Of a stretch of 64,000 nt of DNA, positions 47,813 to 62,327 are shown in pieces (within the stretch, counting starts at the first letter, position 1; each line of letters starts with the position of its first letter). Source of the stretch: Paraphysomonas bandaiensis (taxonomy: Eukaryota; Protista; Chrysophyceae); contig CBFFRP010000019.1 of assembly GCA_965644295.1 (NCBI GenBank), positions 1 to 64,000 of the forward strand. Direction: 5' to 3'. The translations under genes and the position numbers were made by a program. Below the pieces are notes generated by a model, which did not search any database, was not told the DNA's origin, and worked only from the letters and a program-made list of their open reading frames with translations.

Positions 47813-49447
47813 TTAAGTAGTACTTCAAAAGAACTATTCATATTGAACTACAAAAGAATCTACAAGTTATTGCTATTTTTTATTATCTAGAACCCCATTA
47901 CAGCAAGCTTAAACAATAAAAGTCTCCAGCCGACCAAAATGGCCTCAGAGCAACAAGTGATATTATATTGTGTACATACGTACATACATATATATACATC
48001 ATATCATAGCACATATGCGTGCAGGGAGTGCTTGTGACAAGATATTATCAAATAATAAGCAAAAAGTTCCAATGGCGGACATGAATGGTAAGATAAGAAT
48101 TAGAACAAGTGCAGCGCATAGTATGTATAGTATGTATAGTATGTATATCTTATTTAGAGTATAATGATGAATATGGCGTGTCATGTATATAATGACGGTA
48201 GTACATACATAGCACTAATGTGATATATGACTGACATGATGATAAGCATGATAATAATGTAATAGAATGCATGCACAAGCATATAAGAAATTAAAACACA
48301 TCTACACATTATTTCACACTATATATCACCACCCATAAGTGCGCAACACGCTCTCGACCATAGATAGCCGTTATCAGGAGGATTTCCTTTTAGGTCTAGG
48401 TTGAATACTACGATGACACCACAAACACCCAGGATATATTATATTTCCATAGTATAATATATTATACAACTTATTCGCACAACTATATAACACTATGCTG
48501 GAATAATACGTAATGCACTGCATACTCATATATGTGCTGTTGGTGTTGTTGGTGTGTCCTATAGGACCTAAATATTAATAAAAATTATTATTAACACTAT
48601 ACTATTGCATTCAAGCACTTTTAGAACCATTCTACAACAATTCTTAAAAGTCTAGTAAAATCTACTAGAATTTCCCAAATTTCTGAAAATTTCCCACGTT
48701 TGCATGCTGTTTACTTATTTTAATAAGTTAAAATGCGCGAAAATATATAAATTATAAATTAGAGTATTCAAAACTGGCATTTAAGATTGTTAAACGGATT
48801 ATTCTATTAGTCAACTAATAGAAATTACGATAAACATATCTCTCATAATTCATTTTCTAAATTTATACCGTGTCTACTAATACCAACCAATATTATCACT
48901 ACTTAGATAGGCACAATTTTATACAGTCAAAATATTATAGTTTCACTGGTATAGCTCCTGTCATTTCATTTTAAATTAAATTATTGTAATACTGTTTTAA
49001 ATTACTGTATTTATTTATTATAATTTAACAGCTTGAAAACTGAAAACTACAGCTCTTACAAAGATGCTTGCAAAGATGCAAAATTCAACATAGAATATCA
49101 TAAATTAGAAACAAAATTGAAAGAAAAGAAAAATGTATATATCTGGACAATTGGCCACTGCTAAATGTAAAAAACACAGGAAAACGACAAGTTAACCATA
49201 TAGAGAGTCATAGCAAGTGTACAAACGCTTGCATGATCTCCGAAACTTAGAAATCATATCAATGTATACACACTACGGTTATAGAGTATACGTTACTAAA
49301 GAAAGCCGTACATGAAAGTGTGTATTTGATTTATTTATTGGTAGCATATAATATCTATTCCCTTTTATAACTAGTACTCAATCAAAGTATTCTATTCTAG
49401 TGGCACGCACATTATCTGTATAGTTCTAAACACTTAGAGAACAACGT

Positions 49448-52400
49448 CTACGCATCATGTTCATTAGTAAACATAGGATTGACTGCCGCAGAATCGGAAT
49501 TAGAATTCGTCATGTCATCATTCGGACTCCGATATTCTGGTGCGTTGTGCTCCAACACACTACTCGATCCGATAGAAGAATTGTCTTTTGTAACAGCTGT
49601 TGACCTGCAATCACCTTTCTCAATATCAGCATCCGACGGATCTGGTTTACTACCGGGGGTGAATTGATAGTCCTCGGGTCTATCATATGAGTAGTAGGAA
49701 GCAAACACACTAGATCCATCACGATAAAAAAATTCAAATGCATCGTCCGCTTTGGGGTCTGCAGGAGAGCCGTCCATGTTCTCCTTAGGGTCACTCACAA
49801 TTGCTGTGAGGTTAACAGAGCACTGTGACCCATCTATAGAGCTTTGCCGTGAGTTCGAAACTTCAGGGTTTTGTTTGACAGCCTTCTTGCTATGGTCCCT
49901 GACTACTGCCAAAGGACGTGGCCTGCATCGCTGTAGCATTCCTGTAACATATAATCAAACACGTGCATGATATATATATATACTTTTTAACTAGGTGCAT
50001 GACAAGGTTATTACTATACCGTGATTGGGAGGTACGTTTGGAAGATACCACAACAGGCACTTCAGGCGACCATGTACAGCGCACATTATTAGAAAAAAAT
50101 TGAAGAATGGACTCAGAAGGACTGTCTCGAAGTTGACCTGCCAAAAAAGTCTCACATGAAGCCAGATTTAAAAAATAAGTAAAACCTGCAGGTCAGGGTT
50201 TCCCCTCCAACAGAAATAGTTGATATATATATTTCGAAGTAAGGGCCATATAAAAAGCATAAACTTTAAGAGAAAAAACTCGGCGTAGTACCCACGTGAG
50301 AGTATAATGACACAAAAAGGTATATACATCACTTGAACATAAATGATCTTGTACTCTCGAAGTCGATACATGCGGAATGCGATATTCGATAAAACTCCTC
50401 CTCTGGTGTTGTAGGTAAAAAAAGAGTACAAACTCTTTCCTAATAACAGAAATTTAGATAGCGACATCTTGTAGACATGTATATGCGTTGGTTATATTAC
50501 CTGTTATCCGGAGAGCAGACACGGTCCACCTATGTGCTCTCTGCTTCCACAGTGAAGAAGCACCATATCCCTGGACCCGCCCACCAGTTCCACAGTTCAC
50601 AAGAATCGGAGGTGCAAATGTGGTCACCATACAACGTGTTTCTGCCCGAATAGCATAACCCTACGACATGTTTATCAGAGAGTATTGTACGAGTGCTAGA
50701 AATAAAATATACACCTTGTTGAGAAGAGTGAAACCTCCAAATATATCCTCTCCAAATGGTAGGGCTGGGTGAGCACCAAATACCTCTATAAACCGGTCTC
50801 TTCTCCATATGCCTGTAACCAGAGAGTCATTCATATTCGATATAACACACATATGCAAATATCCATAAGCAGGCTGCTCGCACCTGCGGGGCCAGGAACG
50901 AACGCACGAGTAGCAATCTTGCCTTGTGTCGCGTGAAAATGATCGGTAATTTTATACCAAAAGTCGGTAAAATTTGTAACCCTGTTAATTCTGTGGGAAC
51001 AGCGGAGAAACGCCACAGCTGCAACGTGTTCACCGTCGTCAGTTTTGAAGTGCCGCTCGTCAAAGACCATATGATCAGATAGCAAAGTATCATCATCCAA
51101 ATGAATGATGTATTCGCACTGCCGAGGTAATCTGTGACAGCCTGTCCAGAGTGCCCTAGTTTTGTGTCCTTGGGATATGAAGCAATACTGAATATTTTTA
51201 TGTGCCTCTTTAACCACTTCGTATGTGTTGTCAGCAGGCCAGTTGAAGTTGCCGTTGTCACACACTACAATGTTCTCTGGTGGGATATACTTCAAGACTT
51301 GCTTCAGAACCCCCCCAATTTCTTGTGCACTTTTGTGACACGGAATGACAACACCTATTCGGCGAAGGAAGTCAGGGTTGTTTCTATAGCTCCTCCCCTC
51401 CTCTAAATTGTGAGGCATAAGGGCCAGTGGGAGGAAAAATATACCTGCACAAATATCACACAATAACTACGATACAGACAACAATAAGTGATTTACCAAT
51501 ATACGTGAAAGTTGCACACATTAGAGCCACCACGTCATAAGGCTCCCAGTCGTCGATAGTTTTCCATCGCAGAAGTCCATCTTCCCCACTAACCGGGTTG
51601 CCGTACAGTAGCATGGAAAAAAAGAACATGCTAGTAACTAAACCATAACCGAAAATATACCAGAAAGCTTTGCGTGTAGGAGATGCCTGCCAAGGATCCG
51701 TCCACACGAATCTACGAACAATGAAATTAAAAATCATTACACACTGAAAGTGGAGCTACCTGGAGGAGTGAACAAAATCCTCCTCTTCTGCCCAGACAAA
51801 TGTGTCTCGCATAGCAGTGAGACTCTTTCTCGATACGTTAACAAGAGAAGATCTGCTAAGACTATGTCGAAACGACTGATACCATGACCCCCTGCCGTCT
51901 ATGCTGTTCTCTCTGCTGCCATTGTGGCGCCCACCACTAAAACTGGCAGCTCCCGCCGCACTCGCAGCGGAGGGGCGCATGTTTGTCAACATATCCGCAT
52001 CCCCGTACTCATGTGCATATCCGGTCAATATCAAGTCTTGTTGATGCTTTTCTCTCACCGCGATGTGTGCAAAGTAGAACAGGCACATGCAAAGGGCAAT
52101 GCTGGCCACAGGTATAGTGCTAATGAGGAGTACAGCTAGCAGATTCACTTCGTCATCATCATTATCGTCATCGTTTGGAGTAGAGCAGTACACTCCACAG
52201 GAAGCACCGCTACCTAGACGAAATGTTAATCCTTCCAATTACTCTTTCTCATACATACCGGTATAAACTTCCTCATAACTAGAGTTAGCATCACCTGAAC
52301 CAATCAATATGATGTATCAGAAAAAGAGCTCAGTATTCTCATAGAAACTACCTATTCGAAACCGGCTGACGTAGAGGCCCGTCCACTGAGTTAGAGTATC

Positions 52401-53261
52401 CACACCCGACTTCCAAGGTATGTCATAAGATCCCATTTTCACGTACGGTGGGTTGATATCATTAAATGCCGTGAGGATGTTAGATACGTCCACCATCAGC
52501 TCGTTATTTCGCCATACTTTAATGTAACCAGTGGGTGTTCCCCACTGCGCTCACGGAAACATAATAATCAAACACAAATTTCAGCAAACACGATTCATCC
52601 CACCTGCAACTTAACATTTATTACCCAGTCCGTCCATACACCTGGAGCTGGGATGCCCAAGCTATAATAGGAGCATACTTGAGTCGGGGAATCGAATTCC
52701 TTGTTTCCACAAACATTGAGAGTCATTTCGTTGCCTACAAAATAAAAGTGCTGTAAAATTATATACAGCTGTTCTTATGCTATAACCTATGTTCCTTAAA
52801 CCAAACACAGGTGCTTGCCCATTGTTGTCCCCACCATGTAACTGGAAATTATAAATAACTTCCGAATATCCGCCAAAAGTTTGACCACCCCAACTCCAAT
52901 CAGCAGGTATATAATTACTCAATCCAAACCAATATACACCTATTTCACATATGAGATTACTAATCTCTTCAGATTACTATATGAGACCTGTCGTATTAGC
53001 GATCATATCTGTACGATTCTGTTCTTTACATGCAATCTCAGCACGATAACACTCATCACCACCACAGTATGATATATTAGTACGTAACATTGAAGTTGTT
53101 CCATTAAATGATGATGGAACTAATTCAACTATAGCAGTGTATCCCTTAATATCAGGATTCCATAAGTTTAGTGTGGTAAAGTCCTCATCAATGATAAGAG
53201 TACAGTGGATAGTGTAAAGTGAGAGGAAGAGGAAGATGAAAGGTAGAAAGTATTTAATCAT
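49448..53261 (-). CDS. Fusion: signal peptide + polysaccharide-lyase-like jelly-roll domain + TMs + processive GT2 glycan synthase (~13 exons)
   Basis: Lyase-like motifs YRAEI, YWFGLSNYIPADW, FQLHG, WTDWVINVK, GYIKVWRN, PYVKMGSY. GT2 motifs VVIPCH, VCDNG, KTRAL, LDDD, GPAGIWRR, GED, KQRAHRW. Junctions checked are in phase across GT-AG introns. Confidence 0.82.
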
Positions 53262-53456
53262 TGTGTTCTGAGAGGTATTTAATCATGTAAATGGTTGTAT
53301 GTCATGTGGATGATATGTTTGGATGGGTTGGTTAATGCATGCTCTCAACCTCATTCTAACTGCGTATATCCATATAGAACTCTACGTATCCAACACAGCA
53401 TACACCCATAGCCATATACAAATACACTGCTGTATATGCATACCTACCTACCTATG

Positions 53457-53598
53457 CATACATACATACATACATACATACATACATACATACATACATA
53501 CATACATACATACATACATACATACATACATACATACATACATACATACATACATACATACATACATACATACATACATACATACATACATACATACA

Positions 53599-53629
<31 letters not shown>

Positions 53630-53882
53630 CTACATACATACATACATACATACATACATACATACATACATACATACATACATACATACATACATACATA
53701 CATACATACATACATACATACATACATACATACATACATACATACATACATACATACATACATACATACATACATACATACATACATACATACATACATA
53801 CATACATACATACATACATACATACATACATACATACATACATACATACATACATACATACATACATACATACATACATACA

Positions 53883-53911
<29 letters not shown>
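53457..53911 (+). repeat. (TACA)n microsatellite, ~110 units, in a divergent intergenic region
   Basis: Directly visible in the sequence. Confidence 0.98.
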
Positions 53912-53913
<2 letters not shown>

Positions 53914-53973
53914 CTGCTCTGATATATCTAGCTGTCAATATCCTTCCACTCATCCATTCATACTTTACACACC

Positions 53974-55787
53974 ATGCAGCGAATTCTAAAACTCGTTAAC
54001 CATCCAACTGACTGCGTGTCAGAAGCCGTTGAAGGCATGCTTCTAAGCACATCTCATCTCTGTGCTCTTCACAGTCAAGACAGTGTTATTGGAGTGGTAC
54101 ACAGAGACATCACCTCTATACGAGATAAACAAGTTACAATAATCTCTGGAGGAGGATCAGGTCATGAACCTGCTCATGCGGGATACATTGGCGATGGGAT
54201 GTTGTCTGGTGCGGTGCTGGGTAAGGTGTTCGCATCTCCTAGTGTCAGTGCCATCCTATCGGCTATTAGATTATGTGCAGGCTCTAGAGGGGTCCTATTG
54301 ATTATCAAGAACTACACTGGCGATCGTCTTAATTTTGGTATGGCAGCTGAGCGGGCTAAATCAGAGGGAATTGATGTGGAAATGGTGGTAGTTGATGATG
54401 ATTGTGCACTTCCTGAGGGTAAAGGAATTACTGGAGGTAGAGGGGTGGCTGGAACTGTGTTTGTGCATAAGGTTGCTGGGGCTACTGCTAAATGCGGGGG
54501 GTCTCTAGCTGAGGTTCGGGATGCTGCCGAGCGCACAGCCCGACAAGTCAAATCTCTGGGAGCCGCACTCACAGTATGCACTGTTCCAGGATGCCCTCCG
54601 TCCAATCGATTGGATGAACGCTCCATTGAAATGTGTATTGGAATACATGCTGAACCGGGCCAGGTGGAGGAAGTTGGTGAAGACGCACCGTTATCGAGTT
54701 ACGTGAGTAGGACATTGCTAAATAATCTTCTAGGGCATGGTGATACCCCTGGTCGATTGAAAGTTTTACCCGAAGCAGAATTAGCGGTAATGGTGAACAA
54801 CCTTGGAGGTACTTCAGAGCTAGAGATGCTGGTATTTACACGGGATATAATGAATATATTGAATTCTAGGGGGTTCAAACCAGTACGCTGCTATGTGGGT
54901 ACTTTTATGAGCAGTCTCGAGATGGCAGGAGTATCAGTCTCTCTTTTGCCAACAGATAGTTATCTTTTGGAATTGCTTGATGCTCCGACTACTGCAACCG
55001 GTTGGAGACGTTCCGCTATTATGGGACAGACTGGTCCAACTGAAGATCGTATTATTTTATCTGCCCCAATTAGTCGCCAGACAGAAGACATTCGTGGGGG
55101 TGGAGTATGCAAAGGGGCTGAAGCCATTCTCCGTGGCATCTGCGCTTCCTTGATCGAGAATGAAGCCATACTAACGGAATATGATTCTAAGTGTGGTGAT
55201 GGAGACTGCGGTCAAACAGTTCGACGGGCCGCGGAGCATCTTCTTACTTTGGCACATGAACAGCAACTATGCTGGGAAGACTCCGCAAGACTCTGTGCTC
55301 AATTGGCTGACGGTGTGAGTGAAGCGATGGGTGGAACATCTGGAGCCATCATGGAAATTATGTTTAGAGCAATGGCAGCGAAGTTCAGGGGGTCGTCTAC
55401 TGGTCCAGAACAGGAGTCATCATTGCAGGTTTGTCACTGGTATAAGTGTTGTGGTATGTAATACTGAGACAGGACTGGGCGGTAGCTTTCACTGCCGGAA
55501 CAGAAGCGATAATCAAGTATGGTGGAGCAGAAGAAGGGATGCGTACACTGCTGGATGCGCTTTGTCCCGCAGTTCGTTGTCTGTGTGAGGGTTCTCGTGG
55601 AGATTTGGCTGCAGATACTCTTATTAAGGCCAGAGATGCAGCCCAGGTGGGCATGGAGCGCACAAAAGACATGACTAGTTCAGCGGGAAGGGCAAATTAT
55701 GTATCGATTGAGTCCCTTAGGGGCACTCCCGATCCTGGTGCTTATGCTGTATACTTAGCTTTTGCTTCTGCATGCTCGGCTAAATAA
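53974..55787 (+). CDS. TKFC: Dihydroxyacetone kinase / triokinase-FMN cyclase (DAK1+DAK2 domains), one intron ~55429-55472
   Basis: ISGGGSGHEPAHAGYIG, KNYTGDRLNFG, GIHAEPG, GDGDCG, MGGTSGA, RTLLDAL, AGRANY, PDPGA. Confidence 0.95.
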
Positions 55788-60882: not shown

Positions 60883-62327
60883 CTAACCCAAGTTAGCATT
60901 TTGATGAAAAAAATGAGTTACCAAATAACTCTTAAGAGCCTCATGGTCATGAGGGCAACATGCCACGAAATCTCGGCCACGTTGCATTGCATGAGTAGGT
61001 ATATCTCCACAGCGGGACGCTGATACAGAATAGTCTTCACCTAAGTCCTCTACTTCTGTGTCGGCTTCCTCATCGTTTTCTTCGTTTTCTAAGGCGGGGT
61101 TAATGCTCTCCCATTCGAGAATATCATCCCCACTATAAGAGATGAGCATGTTATGAAAAATACATGAGCATTTCCAAGCCGCATCTATGGTGTCCAACTT
61201 GTGGTGCTGGATAGGATTGAGAAAATATCGAAACCTGTTTTTGAGCATCCAAAATGTACACTCAGCGTTCTTTCGTACATTCTCCAAACATTCCGACCAA
61301 ACCCGCTCATCGTGCCGGAAAGGGGTTTGTAATGGATCTATGAGGTAAGGGTACTTATTGTAGCCACCATCTACAAGGAAGTAACCCCCTTTACAAAGTC
61401 GCGGAACGTTGTTGGCATCGTATACTACACCCCTTACATCTTTTAGAAGGCCTCTATGTATTCTTTGTAGCAAATCATCATTGGCGGTACCTGTCTTGTC
61501 ATTATTTGATCCGAAGAAGTAATCACTACTATAGAAGATTCGTTTAGTCGGACCCACTACACATTGGTAAGCCAAGGACGGATATCCTTTCTTGTCTGTG
61601 CACATTTCGGTCAACTCAACAGGGCATTTTCCAAGCCGAACATGTATGCAGTCCAAAGAACCACAACACATGGGAAATCCCATTCGAGCATACGTCCTGA
61701 CGATTGCACATAGCTCATCCCCACTTGGAAAGTAAACGAATTCGTCGAAATAGGCCTACAGTATTATGCAAAGAAACGTATAAGAACTAAGTGGCACATA
61801 AACTTTGAAGTTAATACCTCAGCAAAATTCATAACAAATTGCTTGCAATAAAAATTGCAGGAGTTCTCCGGAATTGAAGAAGACTCTTCAATATCGCTAG
61901 CGCAATTTCCTGTTGCAAGAATCCGTAGAGCGATTAATATTTTAAACTCTATAGGGGTTTTCATGACAGTAGAAGGACCAAATATTTTACCATCTCGGCA
62001 TAATGGTACTAAAAATAGGTCAAATACTGAAAATGGTAAACGAAATCTACGCCGAAATTTCTTTGCCACTGATGAGGATGGATCATTTATTCTCCTGTGG
62101 GTGATCATCTTACCCCATTCAGTTTTCCAAATGTCCACAACTTCATTCTCTCCTGATTCAGTGTCGTTTGTATGTGTCCTTCTCTGTCTCTTTAATGGTG
62201 ATTGAAGGGATGCAGAGGATGCAGAGGATGTAGAGGATTCTGTATCTCTTGTAATGAAATCAACAACTATCTGTATAGCCAACTCACGAACATCAAGATT
62301 TCGTAATCCTTTACAAGTATATATCAT
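60883..62327 (-). mobile_element. PIF/Harbinger-type DDE transposase/nuclease gene, with an in-phase intron at 61756-61817
   Basis: KKFRRRFRL, KILIALRILATG, GFP..GSLDCIH, NNDKT, FLVDGGY, RKNAECTF..LKNRF, CIFHNML. Splicing gtatta..ctgtag joins FAE|AYFDEF and removes the apparent frameshift. Confidence 0.88.

Follow-up and report, generated by a model that had tools for sequence, protein, structure and literature searches.

Enzymes that build a polysaccharide and enzymes that cleave it are commonly paired as separate proteins: Alg8-Alg44 with AlgL, of polysaccharide lyase (PL) family 5, and BcsA with BcsZ, of glycoside hydrolase (GH) family 8, are bacterial pairs encoded in operons, and plant CesA is paired with KORRIGAN (GH9). 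In each of them a membrane synthase of glycosyltransferase family 2 (GT2) works with an exoplasmic enzyme that cuts what it makes, as in the alginate machinery (PMC4436075). In tunicate CesA a GT2 synthase and a C-terminal GH6 cellulase-like domain are found in one polypeptide, the GH6 domain having lost its catalytic Asp (PMC7464555). Here we describe a gene of the heterotrophic chrysophyte Paraphysomonas bandaiensis whose single product joins an N-terminal domain of polysaccharide-lyase fold to a GT2 synthase core. The gene lies on the minus strand of a 64,000-nucleotide stretch of DNA (contig CBFFRP010000019.1, positions 1 to 64,000; hereafter the window), with its coding sequence (CDS) at 53261..49448. 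The window protein resembles tunicate CesA-GH6 in being a eukaryotic, putatively processive GT2 fused to a domain of a polymer-cleaving family; it differs in that its fused domain is N-terminal, has a lyase fold and keeps candidate catalytic residues. Unlike AlgL, an alpha/alpha barrel and a separate protein, the window lyase is a jelly-roll and is covalently linked to the synthase. The pairing of synthase and cutter is as such a familiar theme.

One spliced gene for both halves

The CDS comprises 13 exons (3141 nt) and encodes 1046 amino acids with no internal stop. Exons 1-7 occupy positions 53261-52988, 52939-52787, 52734-52604, 52544-52352, 52294-52259, 52213-51760 and 51711-51497; exons 8-13 occupy positions 51444-50884, 50812-50715, 50660-50501, 50439-50186, 50137-50020 and 49941-49448. 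All 12 introns are short (45-78 nt), have GT..AG ends and keep the frame. RNA support was sought among contigs from public runs placed on 49300-53400, which are assembled contigs and not single molecules. A single spliced contig of 3271 nt from run X2 delimits a minus-strand transcribed unit at 49360..53303, made up of the 5' untranslated region, the 13 exons and 12 introns, and the 3' untranslated region. This contig lacks exactly the 12 modelled introns when junction ambiguity is allowed for. Run X1 contains 11 of the 12 junctions, spread over four contigs, and run X5, a marine metatranscriptome of polyadenylated (polyA) RNA, contains three. A contig devoid of all introns, such as that of X2, must originate from spliced RNA and not from genomic DNA. 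At the last intron (window 49942-50022) the X2 and X5 contigs skip 79 letters and insert one A, and X1 skips 78; 13 single-letter differences are also found along the gene in the X2 and X5 contigs. Both features look like strain or allele variation rather than alternative splicing.

A 'complete' open reading frame (ORF) of 1046 amino acids, recorded in MMETSP for Paraphysomonas (P0173; MMETSP1103), is identical to the gene model over its full length. A 750-amino-acid record of the genus, P0172 (taxid 36769), comes from EukProt/MMETSP1103. The reading frame runs without stop or gap across exon 6, which encodes the end of the lyase domain, the first transmembrane helix (TM1) and a linker, and across exon 7, which encodes TM2 and TM3. 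Neighboring genes (Nup192, XRN1, a lysine methyltransferase, a dihydroxyacetone kinase and the succinyl-CoA ligase beta subunit) are those of ordinary nuclear DNA. Bacterial contamination was considered and ruled out by the spliceosomal introns, the polyA transcripts and the nuclear neighbors Nup192, XRN1 and dihydroxyacetone kinase. The lyase-GT2 fusion is a real single nuclear gene of Paraphysomonas: one gene, one mRNA, one ORF.

An earlier note, made from the letters of this DNA, had proposed that small minus-strand ORFs splice in phase into one protein. The 12 GT-AG introns, the X2 contig and the identity of P0173 bear this out, and the two junctions that it singled out, 52258/52214 and ~51760/51710, are present in the X2 contig, the latter at 51759/51712. 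Nor do transcripts end after the lyase exons, an outcome that the note had envisaged: the spliced contig, the complete MMETSP ORF and single-ORF relatives (see below) all span both halves.

Predicted topology and the two domains

All features below lie on the minus strand. The protein starts with a predicted signal peptide (residues 1-21, MIKYFLPFIFLFLSLYTIHCT; 53199..53261), indicated by a hydropathy scan, by a modelled helix ahead of the jelly-roll and by the hydrophobic leader that homologues have too. It is followed by a PF14099/PL20-like beta-jelly-roll (residues 22-265; 52205..53198), which is spread over exons 1-6 with four short introns within and was assigned from Pfam, profile and AlphaFold2 (AF2) fold. 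A stalk of only ~20 residues connects the jelly-roll to TM1 (residues 287-305; 52086..52142; hydropathy 2.46), where a long AF2 helix (287-332) begins. The ensuing cytosolic linker (residues 306-424; 51681..52085) holds intron 6, is mostly disordered, with a predicted local distance difference test (pLDDT) score <50 at 328-378, and is rich in Ser and Thr (22 of 119 residues); it corresponds to the cytosolic tail of stand-alone paralogues described below. TM2 (residues 425-450) and TM3 (471-494), both seen as AF2 helices, open the synthase core as a pair (51419..51680, with intron 7 inside); in the structural comparison, model residues 436-494 fall on the TM helices at the N-terminus of hyaluronan synthases (HAS). 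Then come the cytosolic GT2 domain of GT-A type (residues 495-740; 50556..51418; PF00535 and PF13641, pLDDT >90), the Q745-R-A-H-R-W750 motif at the start of an interface helix (50526..50543), and the interface helices together with four further TM helices on the C-terminal side (residues 742-880; 50027..50552), which would form the translocation channel. The last are modelled as AF2 helices 742-756, 758-767, 774-795, 797-806, 810-835 and 846-877 with pLDDT 85-97. The last exon (49448..49941) encodes a tail that is, from its composition, disordered, acidic and Ser-rich (residues 883-1046), plus the stop codon; this tail has no Pfam match and varies in length among homologues.

Cleavage of the signal peptide would make the jelly-roll exoplasmic (lumenal or extracellular), TM1 would return the chain to the cytosol and TM2/TM3 would keep the glycosyltransferase there, which gives a coherent predicted topology. 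The layout is that of a hyaluronan synthase plus one extra TM. Two Cys pairs of the jelly-roll, C66/C71 and C151/C163, are invariant in a 12-sequence alignment of the lyase domain (A1, also used as a profile) and would fit an oxidizing compartment.

Pfam places PF14099 (Polysacc_lyase) on residues 44-228 of P0173 with 60.3 bits (cut-off 29.9; E 3.1e-16). Single exons give weak or partial Pfam matches, exon 4 alone scoring 24.5 bits against this family; single-sequence searches of the PDB with either half were uninformative, and NCBIfam gave nothing useful for either. A search of solved structures with the A1 profile finds 2ZZJ, a glucuronan lyase of PL20, at E 4.5e-8; a weak match to AlyQ, a PL7 lyase, covers the strand that carries the Q-x-H motif (QIH in AlyQ). 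The AF2 model of the domain (pLDDT 79) is matched to 2ZZJ by Foldseek with E 9.4e-13 and a TM-score of 0.75, and the VIA comparison superimposes 218 of 238 residues on 2ZZJ at Z 24.4 and a root-mean-square deviation (rmsd) of 2.3 A. The next folds in that comparison are heparinase I (18.0), Cip1 (17.3), GH131 (16.9), and PL7 and GH16 at ~16 (PL7 about 16.5). 2ZZJ belongs to the same Pfam family as the window domain and is by far its best structural match.

Three conserved motifs hold the candidate active-site residues. The first is C-Y-R73-A-E75, in which the R73 codon (53043..53045) specifies a residue invariant in A1 and E75 is encoded two codons further. The second is F-Q124-L-H126-G-G, with the Q-x-H codons at 52836..52844 (Q124 is invariant in A1, H126 is present in 11 of 12 sequences). 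The third is P-Y220-V-K-M-G-S-Y226 (Y220 to Y226 at 52425..52445), in which Y220, G224 and Y226 are invariant. Konno and colleagues are said to have placed the PL20 active site, in 2009, at H53, Q91 and Y200, a numbering that was verified on the 2ZZJ sequence. In alignments with 2ZZJ, Q124 pairs with Q91, and Y226 with Y200 in the segment FRVGLY. The two proteins differ in that 2ZZJ is a secreted fungal enzyme with H53 and no Q-x-H, whereas the window domain is membrane-tethered, fused to a synthase and has R73 and Q-x-H. In PL7 and PL13 enzymes an Arg and a Gln neutralize the carboxylate, a His acts as base and a Tyr as acid. Because Q-x-H supplies a His and R73 stands at the H53 position, the candidate site looks more like that of PL7/PL13, on a PL20-like scaffold. 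PL7 alginate lyases (R(S/T)ELR, QIH, YFKAGxYxQ) follow the same three-motif logic as YRAEI, FQLHG and YVKMGSY here, and the related protein P0030 has a true PL7 domain in the corresponding place (see below); they differ in that Pfam does not assign their family, PF08787, to the window protein and in their lower structural score (Z ~16.5). Given an identity of 17% to 2ZZJ, the ectodomain may well represent a new PL family or subfamily. Of 19 fused domain copies (36-63% identity), 17 retain the full set R73, E75, Q124, H126, Y220 and Y226, with R73 present in all 19 and E75 in 18. Arg and Gln neutralizers, a His base and a Tyr acid on the cleft strands mark the jelly-roll lyases of His/Tyr mechanism (PL7, PL13, PL18, PL20), and the candidate counterparts R73, Q124, H126, Y220 and Y226 are invariant or almost so in A1.

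The GT2 domain of P0173 (residues 515-709) scores 32.5 bits against PF13641 (cut-off 27) and 29.0 bits against PF00535 (cut-off 23.3). In an alignment of 90 sequences of this GT2 family (A2, also used as a profile), H522, D548-N549, K580, D602-D-D604, G670, D695 (in F-G-E-D) and Q745-R746...W750 are near-invariant; D548, D602-D-D604 and G-E-D695, as well as Q745, R746 and W750, are conserved in at least 90% of the 90 relatives. The AF2 model of the synthase has pLDDT >90 over residues 500-880, and its segment 462-877 finds its best structural match in Chlorella virus HAS (CvHAS), superimposing on residues 38-451 over 366 residues with Z 24.6 and an rmsd of 3.2 A, a score tied by the archaeal mannosyltransferase PcManGT at 24.5. 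Other structural matches of the core include Xenopus HAS1 (XlHAS1, 22.3, in the structure 8smn with nascent hyaluronan bound), BcsA (20.4), Chs1 (19.0) and plant CesA (18). The core shares with the class I HAS enzymes of Chlorella virus and Xenopus a pair of TMs ahead of a cytosolic GT-A domain, with interface helices and further TMs behind it, as well as the DxD motif, an acidic base motif G(E/D)D and a helix with xRW; uronic acid is part of the HAS product. Identity to these enzymes is 13-14%, and the fusion differs from them in having KQRAHRW in place of QQxRW, an ectodomain added at the N-terminus with its TM and linker, and a long tail at the C-terminus. Membership of class I HAS by sequence was rejected, since no HAS is among the PDB sequence matches of the core and WGT is missing, the gating-loop motif WGTxGR(K/R) being absent from it; it is HAS-like in fold only. 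Identity as a chitin synthase was rejected as well, P0173 having no match to PF03142, PF01644 or other chitin-synthase families of Pfam and an I after GED where the EDR motif of chitin synthases, which also have QRRRW, calls for R; motifs and Pfam excluded a cellulose synthase. The modelled core would thus be a HAS-type synthase-translocase in its layout that stands outside the HAS, chitin-synthase and cellulose-synthase families by sequence. In the clade of PL-fused synthases the basic residues R582, R590, R633, R665, R784, K789 and R827 are found, and the otherwise conserved E648 is lost. An anion-conducting channel lining made of clade-specific basic residues was entertained; the excess of Lys and Arg over background is small, and it was not counted.

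The order of parts that the earlier note had read from the sequence (signal peptide, lyase domain, TM, linker, two TMs, GT2, further TMs) is borne out by hydropathy, AF2 and Pfam, and its motifs RAEI, YWFG, YIPADW, QLHG, WTDW, GYIKVW, YVKMGSY, DNG, DDD, GED and QRAHRW are all present. Its assignment of the N-terminal half to PL13/PL20-like jelly-rolls of PF14099 agrees with the Pfam score and the 2ZZJ superposition, and the domain is not one devoid of lyase fold or catalytic residues: the fold is that of 2ZZJ and the putative R/Q-x-H/Y set is kept. Of the D,D,D,QxxRW signature that it had ascribed to the synthase, D548, DDD and GED stand; QRAHRW reads QxxxRW and not QxxRW, and fits (Q/R)xxRW only from R746. 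The Pfam scan, the AlphaFold and topology predictions and the search of protist proteomes that it had suggested returned PF14099 plus GT2, a coherent topology and relatives with the same architecture. It had also called this architecture uncharacterized, and in the literature no description was found of a polysaccharide-lyase-GT2 fusion or of this GT2 family; precedents of the design are tunicate CesA-GH6 (PMC7464555) and bacterial GH16-GT2 clusters. Relatives appear in databases under the names 'hypothetical protein' or 'glycosyltransferase'.

Relatives, paralogues and the GT2 family tree

An exhaustive HMMER search with exon 8 yielded only 297 relatives. The closest of them (P0169, P0177, P0175, P0181, P0167, P0003/P0153, P0166, P0168 and P0156) are colinear with the window protein over the whole architecture, with identities of 38-63%. 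More than 15 homologues share this order, and P0006 has two lyase domains in tandem. Some homologues are intron-free, among them ORFs on metagenome contigs that belong to a colinear set with 45-63% identity. In P0003, P0153, P0166 and P0230 the fusion is a single uninterrupted ORF on a metagenome contig and hence needs no splicing. P0230 (RYH27474.1, 1051 aa) was deposited as 'MAG: glycosyltransferase [archaeon]', MAG denoting a metagenome-assembled genome; because it falls into one 90%-identity cluster with EukProt gene models, its contig is probably mis-binned eukaryotic DNA. A second fusion gene is found in the same genome as the window gene at G000:C9:115086-118543 (L011). It is expressed, and its exons match the complete MMETSP ORF P0177 (1071 aa), with 98-99% identity in two N-terminal exon matches. 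The C9 paralogue and the window protein are ~85% identical in the GT2 core and 40-50% in the lyase half. Paraphysomonas thus has two copies of the fusion; Ochromonas has one, P0234 (MMETSP1105).

When the GT2 cores are placed in a maximum-likelihood tree, the PL20-like fusions group together as a single clade (support 100); the lyase-GT2 fusion is an old chrysophyte clade. Its sister branch includes P0030, a record from ENA metagenome contigs that is cut at both ends, and a protein of the pelagophyte Chrysophaeum that consists of GT2 alone. P0030 has a PL7 alginate-lyase domain, a TM, several more TMs and then GT2, and the PL7 motifs are intact (RIELR, QLH, YYKVGNY). Q-L-H126 of the window protein aligns with the QLH of this domain. 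An hhalign comparison of the lyase profile with the P0030 PL7 domain aligned only the QLHG strand, with negligible probability, and was not used as evidence of homology.

GH16-GT2 fusions (Chrysophaeum P0049, P0200 and others) form a separate GT2 clade. These proteins of Chrysophaeum taylorii and the clusters from Myxococcota and Armatimonadota share the design of the window protein, and on the P0049/P0200 branch the TM count is the same, three TMs separating ectodomain and GT2 in both PL20-like and GH16 fusions. They differ in that GH16 is a hydrolase/transglycosylase family and in their position on another branch of the GT2 tree, and are likewise uncharacterized. The nearest ESM-Atlas clusters by features are bacterial GH16-GT2 proteins, with scores of 0.90-0.91. 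Still another clade is of the type nucleotide-sugar/PAPS (3'-phosphoadenosine-5'-phosphosulfate)-type transporter-GT2-sulfotransferase (P0015, P0061). P0015 combines a TPT/EamA transporter, GT2 and a C-terminal sulfotransferase; P0061, a truncated record, has the transporter alone. Outside the tree, P0211 is a GT2-sulfotransferase, and P0194 joins the same GT2 family to a Na+/H+ exchanger domain. These four proteins are candidate one-chain factories for sulfated polysaccharides.

Five stand-alone, intron-poor genes of the same genome encode a signal peptide, a PF14099-like domain, a TM and a disordered tail: L007 (G000:C39), L009 (C412), L010 (C577), L016 (C168) and L017 (C173). The N-terminal half of the fusion looks as if it was donated by a gene of this kind. 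The R/E/Q-x-H/Y/Y set is intact only in the C39 copy; the other four have lost it and keep the Cys pairs and core Trp. R73 is missing from three of the five, and E75 from four. In two of the proteins, C-type lectin domains (PF00059) interrupt the sandwich ahead of its final strands, three in L016:48-2711 (-) and two in L017:778-2997 (-). The absence of catalytic-type residues and the presence of these domains suggest that both are lectin-like receptors. The retention of the residue set in fused copies, and its loss from four of five paralogues, points to selection of the fused copies for chemistry and not for the fold alone, and is the best available evidence for this. A polysaccharide deacetylase ORF (PF01522; L009:2720-3853 (-)) directly adjoins the lyase-like gene on C412, and the two products have in common an unusual N-terminal segment (MLHP.EFA...EC.. 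L..AK) and a stalk rich in Pro, Thr and Ser.

What the tethered lyase may do

We estimate at roughly 50% the probability that the fused synthase builds an acidic polysaccharide and that the tethered lyase cuts the chain as it emerges. From the topology, and by analogy with HAS and BcsA, the core would polymerize one or two nucleotide sugars in the cytosol and thread the polymer through its own channel. With its Arg/Gln neutralizer, His base and Tyr acid, the residue set suggests beta-elimination as the way in which the ectodomain would cut the chain on its exit. Hyaluronan synthases extrude their product with the reducing end ahead. Should this apply to the fusion, each cut would free the older segment with a 4,5-unsaturated uronate at the new non-reducing end and elongation would continue; in that case the fusion would serve to release the polymer or to set its length. 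Because beta-elimination can cut only where a uronic acid is present, the predicted product is acidic, most likely a polyuronate or a uronate-containing polymer (glucuronan-, mannuronan- or hyaluronan-like). A UDP-glucose-dehydrogenase-type gene on contig C64 of the genome is compatible with a uronate product and not specific for it. A single synthase family carries, on branches that lie well apart, different exoplasmic domains that modify glycans, and this speaks for both halves working on one polymer.

Several observations weigh against this reading. On the lyase side, identity to 2ZZJ, the sole PL20 structure, is only 17%, and the PL20 site is not copied, R73 occupying the position of H53. 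The same fold houses hydrolases (GH131, GH16) and non-enzymes (Cip1, lectin-like proteins) and does not by itself make a lyase. Moreover, Q-x-H is lost in Ochromonas P0234 and in the first copy of the tandem pair of P0006. On the synthase side, the spacing in K-Q-R-A-H-R-W is non-canonical and conforms to (Q/R)xxRW only when read from R746. No significant sequence match of the GT2 core to solved synthases was obtained with the single sequence or with the 90-sequence profile, no HAS being among the PDB hits, and archaeal PcManGT, a non-polymerizing mannosyltransferase described as a 'minimal cellulose-synthase-like fold', ties the hyaluronan synthases at Z 24.5. UDP-glucose dehydrogenase is needed for other pathways too. 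Finally, a complex prediction for the ectodomain plus TM1 against the core returned no answer (score 0.00), which is evidence neither for nor against docking.

Some of these points are shared by the view that the jelly-roll is a non-catalytic module that binds or guides the polymer and does no cutting. This view draws on the occurrence of the fold in lectin-like and non-enzymatic proteins (Cip1, neurotoxin binding domains), on the four stand-alone paralogues without the polar set, two of them with C-type lectin inserts, as a sign that the scaffold is used for binding, on the tunicate CesA-GH6 fusion without its catalytic Asp (PMC7464555) and on the missing Q-x-H of P0234. We regard it as unlikely, though a serious contender, in that R, E, Q-x-H, Y and Y persist in 17 of 19 fused copies and are lost in the binding-type paralogues, and in that the PL7 domain fused to the sister GT2 retains all three PL7 catalytic motifs. 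Alternatively, the lyase could be active in trans, either on deposited polymer, as in remodelling of the matrix or turnover of scale cases, or on polyuronates of foreign origin (prey, exudates of algae), the fusion merely co-localizing two activities. Paraphysomonas is a phagotroph of polysaccharide-rich habitats, and the membrane-anchored C39 copy with its intact set indicates that no synthase is needed for the domain to work; bacterial AlgL, too, is believed to clear stray polymer and not to trim the nascent chain. Such an arrangement seems rather improbable to us, however, because PL20-like, PL7 and GH16 domains sit in equal position and topology on separate, well-supported GT2 branches, which is hard to explain without a match of substrate, and because the stalk between jelly-roll and TM1 is so short (~20 residues).

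That the ectodomain is instead a hydrolase or transglycosylase of GH131, GH16 or Cip1 type, acting on a neutral beta-glycan (beta-glucan, chitin-like) made by the GT2, would accord with structural neighbors at Z 16-17, with GH16-GT2 fusions in the same GT2 family and in bacteria, and with the loricae of chitin or cellulose known from chrysophytes. Yet A1 contains no conserved Glu/Asp pair of the GH16 type ExDxxE, E75 and D178 being its only invariant acidic residues, and what is conserved is R/Q/H/Y, as in lyases; the family assigned by Pfam is PF14099, not GH16, and the PL20 match stands at Z 24.4 against ~16-17. A neutral product is accordingly judged quite improbable. As to an artefact, in which read-through, or the assembly of transcripts that overlap, linked a type-I membrane lyase-like gene to a neighboring GT2 gene, the run evidence is at the level of assembled contigs and stand-alone lyase-TM-tail genes do exist in the genome. 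This explanation is scarcely credible in the face of a continuous frame through exons 6-7, of two independent assemblies (the X2 contig and P0173) with the same full-length ORF, of the more than 15 colinear homologues, some intron-free, and of a topology that works only with the extra TM.

To return to cutting of the emerging chain by the fused lyase, a broader proposal can be built on it, tentatively and with the odds against it. The PL-fused branch (the chrysophyte PL20-like fusions and the sister PL7 protein) might be the first identified eukaryotic polyuronate synthases, of glucuronan or mannuronan type, with the lyase as a processive length setter that cuts while the chain is extruded; the wider family might be single-polypeptide factories for acidic or sulfated exopolysaccharides of marine protists. 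To our knowledge, the enzymes that make the acidic exopolysaccharides of marine protists are largely unknown. The brown-algal mannuronan synthase is still only 'putatively a GT2' (PMC11468063). In the family described here the partner domain hints at the product of an orphan synthase, a lyase at a uronate, GH16 at a neutral beta-glycan and a sulfotransferase at a sulfated polymer, so that the family can be tested with few substrates. With synthase and lyase in one chain, the fusion would offer a small natural system in which to study the control of polymer length and release, and possibly a tool for making uronan oligomers of defined size. Given that the gene is expressed in open-ocean polyA metatranscriptomes, its product may form part of the dissolved or particulate carbon of the sea.

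Elsewhere in the window, a long (ACAT)n microsatellite at 53400-53920, which reads as TYIH or MYVC repeats in every frame, takes up most of the ~700 bp that separate the divergent dihydroxyacetone-kinase gene from the start of the fusion gene. The kinase gene (53974-55461, plus strand) encodes Dak1 and Dak2 domains. Further along, an ORF at 60883-61683 on the minus strand has Plant_tran/DDE_Tnp_4 domains of a Harbinger/PIF-type transposase.

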